64,000 bases of DNA from Pecten maximus. Lineage: Eukaryota. Shown here in pieces: positions 36,900 to 37,965 of the stretch. Under the pieces are notes generated by a model. It made no database searches, was not told the DNA's origin, and was given only the letters and a program-made list of their open reading frames with translations. Positions within the stretch are counted from its first letter, which is position 1. Every line of letters starts with the position of its first letter. A program made the translations under genes and the position numbers. The stretch covers positions 25,110,001 through 25,174,000 of the forward strand of contig NC_047020.1 of NCBI RefSeq assembly GCF_902652985.1, written 5' to 3'.

Positions 36900-37965
36900 T
36901 TTCTTTGAGTATTTAGATAAAGAAGAATGGTGGGTGGAGGTGAACATAAAATACGTACGTGTAAGTGTACCTAACACCGTGGTCTATCAATACCGTATAC
37001 GTAACAAATCATCAGTTTGTCCCATCTTCCACTAACATCCGGGCACTCGCTTTTAATGTGAAGATACTTGTACGTCGTTTCCGTCCCCGACCTGTACAAA
37101 TTAATACGAATGACGAAGAAAAAACCAATTCACTTTGAATGAAATCTTGAAATTTCCTAGATCTTTTGATCCGATTTCCCCCATATTGTCATTTACACTA
37201 CGCGTCTCGGCTGATACTGTACTGAGCCTATATATTGTTTAATTTATTCCTTTTCAGTTCTAACAAACAGCAGAGACATATATACAGATCTGTATATATG
37301 TCTTTGCAAACAGTTAATATAACCAGAGACATAATATTTCTCTGATATAACTAAGAACTTAGATATCGATCTCTGAGTTAATCCAGAAACTAGTAAATCT
37401 ATCATTTTCATTGAGAAAAGACATCACTTCACTTTCACAATGTTTTTGGACAGTATCGTAACCGTTTGAACGGACATTCATGTTAAAGATGAGTTAAATT
37501 AACGTGTTAGGATAATACAACACATTCATAAGTTTAACCAAAGACATATGTATATGTCTCTGGTTTAACCAGAGACGTATACAAGTCTCTGGTTTAACCA
37601 GGGACGTCTCTTGTTTAACACATTAAAAGTCGTAGCTATTTAACGCATTAAAAACAAATCCTTATTTTCACGCAAAATTTAAATCTGACATATATTTTCT
37701 CACAGAACTGCCGTTTTGTTTTCCGAAGGATTACCGTTTAGTAAAAGAGTCGGAGTAAGCAGTGACGTACGAAATTTCATCGCGACTATTTCCAACATGG
37801 CTGCGCCCTAGCTAGCACCACGACGAGCCGCTATCTGCTTTAGTATAAGCAGATACTTGTATATACAAGTCTCTGGTATAAGCTACAGCTCTGTATTCAC
37901 TGTTGACATTCAGTTTTTCATTATGAATATCAAAGAACATTAAACACCTTCAGATTTTAAAGGTA
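36900..37965. promoter_or_regulatory. Putative bidirectional promoter of AASDHPPT/GTPBP8 and non-coding first exon of GTPBP8
   Basis: Head-to-head genes, local CpG enrichment, CRE-like TGACGTA (37763), YY1-like AACATGGC (37794) and donor AG|GTAAAT at 37963. Confidence 0.55.
37264..37882. mobile_element. Six 14-36 bp palindromic inserts with 7-bp target-site duplications (candidate P-superfamily excision footprints)
   Basis: Inserts 37271-37306 (TSD CAAACAG), 37324-37344 (ATATAAC), 37539-37562, 37570-37591 and 37599-37612 (GTTTAAC), and 37850-37875 (GTATAAG). Termini resemble CAGAGAC...GTCTCTG. Confidence 0.75.

Follow-up and report, generated by a model that had tools for sequence, protein, structure and literature searches.

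The closest described system is the Drosophila P element, whose transposase makes a 17-nt staggered cut that has been described as distinctive of this enzyme (PMC7776569, PMC10983969), and whose excision leaves as much as ~17 nt from either inverted repeat between the target site duplications (TSDs; PMC7776569). P elements also show a preference for promoters (PMC7776569) and repeated use of sites (PMC1592238). Galileo and 1360 generate TSDs of 7 bp with a GT...AC palindrome, have the target consensus GTANTAC and comprise far more defective than coding copies (PMC4168063, PMC3698922), and BuT5 consists of non-coding elements of ~1 kb whose similarity to a presumed master is confined to the ends (PMC3698922). 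The hAT, Transib and Mutator/MULE enzymes form hairpins on the flanks and leave no element ends behind (PMC5499845). Here we describe a cluster of short palindromes that resembles the scars of the P element in architecture, though not in sequence, in a genome of 918,306,378 bp in 3,983 scaffolds, the longest of 60,076,705 bp; the published assembly of the king scallop Pecten maximus has these same figures (PMC7191990). The window, i.e. the whole 64-kb stretch of DNA that was analyzed and to which positions refer unless stated otherwise, is part of scaffold 6.

Between positions 37264 and 37882 the window contains six short palindromes, with inserts of 36, 21, 24, 22, 14 and 26 nt respectively, each of which is flanked on both sides by exact direct copies of a 7-mer and ends in CAGAGAC or its complement with 0-2 mismatches across the 14 terminal bases. 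We consider it very probable that these are excision footprints of real transposon families belonging to a single CAGAGAC clade with 7-bp TSDs, and number them 1 to 6 (their coordinates carry no strand). In footprint 1 the 7-mer CAAACAG (37264-37270 and 37307-37313) encloses an insert (37271-37306) made of 17-18 nt from each end of the transposon family that we call A, while footprint 2, between two copies of ATATAAC (37317-37323 and 37345-37351), has an insert (37324-37344) of about 10 nt from each family-A end. Footprints 3-5 (37532-37619) are strung between four copies of GTTTAAC that start at 37532, 37563, 37592 and 37613: the insert of footprint 3 (37539-37562) has family-A ends, that of footprint 4 (37570-37591) combines one end of each type found in a second family, B, and that of footprint 5 (37599-37612) is a 7+7 remnant. 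Footprint 6, between copies of GTATAAG (37843-37849 and 37876-37882), joins two family-B ends of the TTG type via a self-complementary 8-nt core (insert 37850-37875). The preliminary description of this locus had reported six palindromes with exact 7-bp TSDs as independent insertions; all six are present where it placed them and their repeats are exact. Moreover, as the three GTTTAAC inserts derive from different terminus families, tandem duplication is excluded and they must be separate events at one target, so that the insertions are indeed independent and fell on four target sites, with one 7-mer used three times. A scan for this architecture returned 7 matches in the real window (six that represent these sites plus one compound of them, and an unrelated one at 57187), while in 40 first-order Markov simulations of the window the matches averaged 0.10 and never exceeded 1. 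A relaxed scan that tolerated one 7-mer mismatch and two terminus mismatches added nothing beyond the cluster in the 64 kb, in keeping with the earlier statement that no others occur in the window. At the genome-wide density of the exact-terminus class (3.6e-6 per bp), a 620-bp stretch should contain 0.002 such sites.

The cluster lies between two divergent transcription units. To its left, on the minus strand, is a gene for a 4'-phosphopantetheinyl transferase (AASDHPPT-like), whose first coding exon (35742-35929) is supported by RNA contigs and by the Pfam domain AASDHPPT_N, which was detected on two exon ORFs with E-values of 1e-12 and 6e-18. In one RNA contig 35929 is directly followed by 36959, which reveals the 3' part of a non-coding first exon (36959-36980, minus strand); the skipped segment, 36958-35930, ends in CT..AC, corresponding to a GT..AG intron on the minus strand, and the start of this transcript lies at or above about 36980. 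To the right, RNA contigs define exon 1 of a plus-strand gene (37805-37960), with a GT donor at 37961, which is spliced to about 39692-40142. The RNA evidence consists of contigs on the window, and hence the transcript starts are bounds only. From the exon positions an intergenic stretch of ~830 bp (36981-37804, no strand) separates the two first exons; footprints 1-5 are inside it and footprint 6 is inside the 5' exon of the right-hand gene. As the cluster is thus flanked by two divergent first exons, its designation as a bidirectional promoter, made originally from the letters alone, holds. The same position might invite a reading of these structures as transcription-factor sites of palindromic form or as promoter motifs of some other kind under selection. 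We attach a negligible probability to it: the same termini occur on kilobase transposons, the sites are flanked by different exact 7-bp repeats, one of them is absent in another individual, their lengths range from 14 to 36 nt, and there are thousands of them genome-wide. Other repetitive features of the window include a GC-rich tandem repeat at 32000-34400, with a GC skew of -0.91, which gives rise to long repetitive open frames, and a run of 175 N at 11997-12171. Intron 1 of the right-hand gene harbors a high-copy repeat in which 13 copies of the 12-mer CACAATGTCCCA, as against 0.55 expected, form two inverted arrays (38034-38209 on the plus and 38941-39075 on the minus strand), resembling a foldback-type element with subterminal repeats.

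Independent DNA data from another individual, X4, provide an empty-site allele, which the preliminary description had proposed to look for in other individuals. A single X4 contig covers 36822-37263 and resumes at 37307, and so lacks exactly one 7-mer plus the 36-nt palindrome of footprint 1, which is therefore polymorphic. At 37338 X4 has a G, giving footprint 2 a canonical terminus, and the T of the reference is accordingly a later point change. Footprints 3-6 are present in both X4 and a further individual, X5, and footprints 3-5 are gap-free in the latter. No allele with a full element was seen at any of the six sites of the window. A separate insertion polymorphism is found in an intron of the right-hand gene, where a 739-bp element (40162-40900) is present in the reference and skipped in X4 and X5; it is a very high-copy, non-coding, Tc1/mariner-like element with ~24-bp inverted ends and a TA duplication.

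The preliminary description had further expected full elements that bear these termini and encode a P-type transposase, and of this the first part stands, as longer copies exist, while a transposase was seen in none of the copies examined. Genome-wide there are about 1,750 matches to the terminal 17 nt of the 36-nt palindrome, and forward and reverse matches to this end lying 0.9-1.8 kb apart bound the non-coding elements of family A, which have a 23-bp terminal inverted repeat (TIR), exact 7-bp TSDs in six cases and an interior of ~210-bp repeats whose number varies between copies. The two ends of family B differ slightly from each other and are those found in the other palindromes of the window; this family is represented by 51 full ends, with copies of 0.3 to 10.5 kb, one of which, at 9.4 kb, has an exact TSD. 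Copies of family C are about 4 kb long, with a 31-bp TIR and exact TSDs, and families C and D have the CAGAGAC tip and a TATA-rich core in common.

Across the genome the palindromes are counted in thousands. The broad class, defined as any pair of 7-nt tips within 44 nt, numbers 3,339 against 164 in the reversed-pattern control; with the same control, family-A footprints number 814 versus 0, family-B termini 851 versus 0 and family-C termini 1,529 versus 0. Of the 31-bp repeat of family C just 183 complete instances exist, compared with 1,529 of its terminal 17-mer, and in family B the terminal sequence is found 851 times as against 51 full ends. This excess of terminal sequences over full TIRs indicates that scars are several-fold commoner than resident copies; for family C the matches listed give an estimate of about 650 scar sites to about 90 elements. 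All of the first 20 census sites, taken unselected, have 7-bp flanking repeats, 15 of them exact and 5 with differences of one or two bases, and extension from 7 to 8 bp fails in this sample. Similarly, the repeats are exact at 39 of 44 collected sites and near-exact at the remaining ones. Scar lengths span 14 to about 46 nt genome-wide, and fillers and asymmetric ends occur among them.

In the scars of family C, 886 ends retain at least 17 nt and just 7 retain at least 19 nt, in a tally whose search pattern allowed about 25 nt of terminus. In family A 10-18 nt are retained per side in a computed sample, with a maximum of 18, and among the matches listed a by-eye tally of 49 distinct scars contained none exceeding 18 nt. 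The length ceiling proposed beforehand thus takes the form of a sharp stop at 17-18 nt per end. The commonest product of family C is 32 nt long and represents two 17-mers overlapping in their terminal self-complementary TA, followed by classes of 34 and 36 nt (17+17 and 17+TA+17) and then by one of 29 nt joined within the TATA core; in family B a 33-nt product recurs. The family-A tip is not self-complementary and yields no dominant full-length class, its junctions falling mostly within a TATATA core to give classes of 20, 22, 24 and 26 nt. This junction pattern is the one expected from end-joining of two identical 17-nt single-stranded tails on the flanks. The 17-nt unit also appears in an array at C1:11141027-11142070 (1468-2524 of locus L005), where a scar between two CTGTGGG 7-mers contains about 60 head-to-tail copies of its terminal 17-nt unit, with a period of 17 reported by TRF.

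Taken together, the end tallies of families C and A and the unit of this array fit a donor cleavage staggered by ~17 nt, as read from the scars. In the mechanism that we propose, an element would insert with duplication of 7 bp of the target, and upon its excision the transposase would cut one strand at the tip of the element and the other about 17 nt inside. Such a staggered cut would leave a 17-nt single-stranded piece of the element on each flank, and end-joining may then trim, anneal or fill the two like tails, often via the self-complementary TA core, with 14-36 nt of inverted terminal sequence between two 7-mers as the outcome.

Two other origins of the palindromes have to be weighed against excision. 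If they were micro-MITEs inserting as units of 14-36 bp, with the full element never having been present at these sites, one would readily understand why units of 32 nt and 33 nt are found in identical form at numerous loci, where each is accompanied by a 7-bp duplication of its own, and the empty allele of footprint 1 would fit as well, as it fits insertion of any size. However, such units should be homogeneous in size and sequence, and we rejected a MITE or minimal mobile unit in view of the length spectrum, the fillers and the asymmetric retention, all capped at 17-18 nt. Furthermore, microhomology between like tails predicts just the classes that are frequent, with no dominant full-length class in family A, a 32-bp duplex is not cuttable 17 nt in from both ends, and elements of this kind normally require subterminal binding sites. 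We therefore regard this origin as quite improbable. P elements make internally deleted copies during repair, and the palindromes could by analogy be extreme internal deletions made in place by interrupted gap repair. The breakpoints of such deletions should scatter, yet of the ends extending to nt 17 as many as 99% go no further than nt 18, and the short AT-rich fillers and microhomology joins fit end-joining, all of which makes interrupted gap repair very improbable. Excision footprints hence remain our preferred explanation of the palindromes.

The enzyme responsible is a separate question. The transposase is perhaps of the P (THAP9) type, a reading that we favor slightly. The TSD of 7 bp in the CAGAGAC clade is within the 7-8 bp of the P superfamily, and the genome encodes several young, intact families of P-type transposases that could act in trans. 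The P-type RNase-H-domain (PF21787) gives 44 hits in at least 6 families, several of which are near-identical and multi-copy, with open frames of 738-1007 aa. The hits include C5:3894063, C1:29549127, C6:47240080 and C6:47244744, and among them is one inverted pair 4.6 kb apart. None of the 44 carries CAGAGAC termini within 4-5 kb or is inside a family-B element; these termini were absent from 30 of the loci when searched at ±1.5 kb, from five families at ±4 kb and from one at 10 kb, and the own ends of the P-type families were not found at the loci read. A search for the 23-bp TIR joined to a foreign arm gave 7 hits, every one a point variant. In the copies of families A, B and C that were examined, the search in family B covering the middle 1.5 kb of the 9.4-kb copy, which is non-coding, we detected no transposase domain, and in no copy of these families that was read is there an ORF with a THAP domain and an RNase H fold split by a GTP-binding domain. 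Several longer copies had been considered as candidates for autonomous elements and were set aside. The extra DNA of a 3.5-kb family-A copy is a retrotransposon fragment (zf-RVT), and the 4-9 kb copies of family C are non-coding, their added length being a nested MITE and a nested MULE; in both families the size of the long copies is due to foreign elements inserted into them. None of the family-B copies brackets a P-type hit. The nested Mutator-like element (L113:5215-8009 on C3, inside a family-C element) has ~500-bp inverted repeats and contains MULE, Ulp1-protease and PHD fragments.

Consequently the membership in the P superfamily that the preliminary description had suggested is not established, there being no transposase in the copies examined and no such termini at the 44 P-type hits. 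The clade shares the 7-bp TSD with Galileo and 1360, yet no transposase was found, and we accordingly describe it as working like the P element rather than filing it as a member. The likeness to the P element extends to scars whose TSDs enclose at most ~17 nt from either inverted repeat (PMC7776569), but the P-element TSD is 8 bp and its termini are unrelated in sequence, and the scars described here are natural, fixed or segregating, present in thousands and found in a bivalve in which no transposase gene for them was found. With Galileo and 1360 the clade has in common, besides the TSD length, a palindromic target, internal tandem repeats and an excess of defective copies (PMC4168063, PMC3698922), whereas the TIRs of Galileo are very long and foldback and those here measure 23-31 bp, with internal repeats that are direct. 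It also recalls BuT5 in its non-coding elements (PMC3698922), though the master of BuT5 has been found and that of the CAGAGAC clade has not.

A lesser but real possibility is that the palindromes are true excision footprints of a non-P/THAP9 enzyme from another, perhaps undescribed superfamily, which likewise cuts about 17 nt inside the ends. In its favor, a P-type domain is absent from every element and terminus vicinity examined, and to our knowledge there are many superfamilies whose cleavage chemistry no one has investigated. The termini of animal hAT elements such as hobo and Hermes start with CAGAG and resemble the CAGAGAC tip. On the other hand, we know of no groups in the Repbase classification other than the P-group elements and Dada for which 7-bp TSDs are typical; Dada targets small-RNA genes. 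The flank hairpins of hAT, Transib and MULE enzymes also speak against a non-P enzyme of these kinds, as they leave no ends. Membership in hAT was rejected, the TSD being 7 rather than 8 bp and the scars keeping 10-18 nt of the element ends where hAT excises through hairpins (PMC5499845), and so was membership among Mutator-like elements, as these have TSDs of ~9 bp, long TIRs and flank hairpins, in contrast to the 7-bp TSD and 23-31 bp TIRs of the clade.

The targets were compared at 37 sites after pooling of strands. The resulting motif is palindromic, 64% of the sites having T/A at TSD positions 2/6 and 76% having T/A at -3/+3, and differs from the motifs of Galileo and P; it agrees with that of Galileo in the T at 2 and the A at 6 but has T and not A at -3. 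All four targets of the window are consistent with this profile, and as the motif has 173 matches across the window its density cannot account for the cluster. Clustering is also evident elsewhere: the first 50 sites of the broad class include six neighbor gaps of at most 2 kb as against 0.25 expected (P about 3e-7), and scars of different families lie within a few hundred bp of each other near, for example, 7.099, 8.504, 34.804 and 35.746 Mb of C1. Clustering is thus strong, whereas the marking of germline-open promoters across the genome, raised in the preliminary description, is a conjecture. The 620-bp stretch is thus an insertion hotspot, one of several multi-family clusters in the genome, and in the proposed scheme at least two families (A and B) would have inserted there at four target sites, one of which would have been used three times.

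These observations imply that the genome records the cut position of at least 3 unrelated-looking mollusc families of transposons, without recourse to biochemistry. With an enzyme of the P type, they would constitute comparative evidence for an ancient origin of the long stagger; with any other enzyme, the stagger chemistry would have arisen twice. The bolder form of the latter, in which the CAGAGAC clade is run by a non-P/THAP9 transposase and represents a second cut-and-paste lineage that staggers its cuts by 17 nt, with >3,000 heritable scars and multi-family clusters that map germline-accessible promoters, strikes us as unlikely. The array of about 60 exact 17-nt tails suggests a possible path from a product of break repair to a satellite. 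Being recognizable, present in thousands and in some cases polymorphic, the scars form a record of past transposition, which may serve as a gauge of excision versus insertion and of repair choices in the scallop germ line, and as a candidate marker for promoters and other insertion hotspots.
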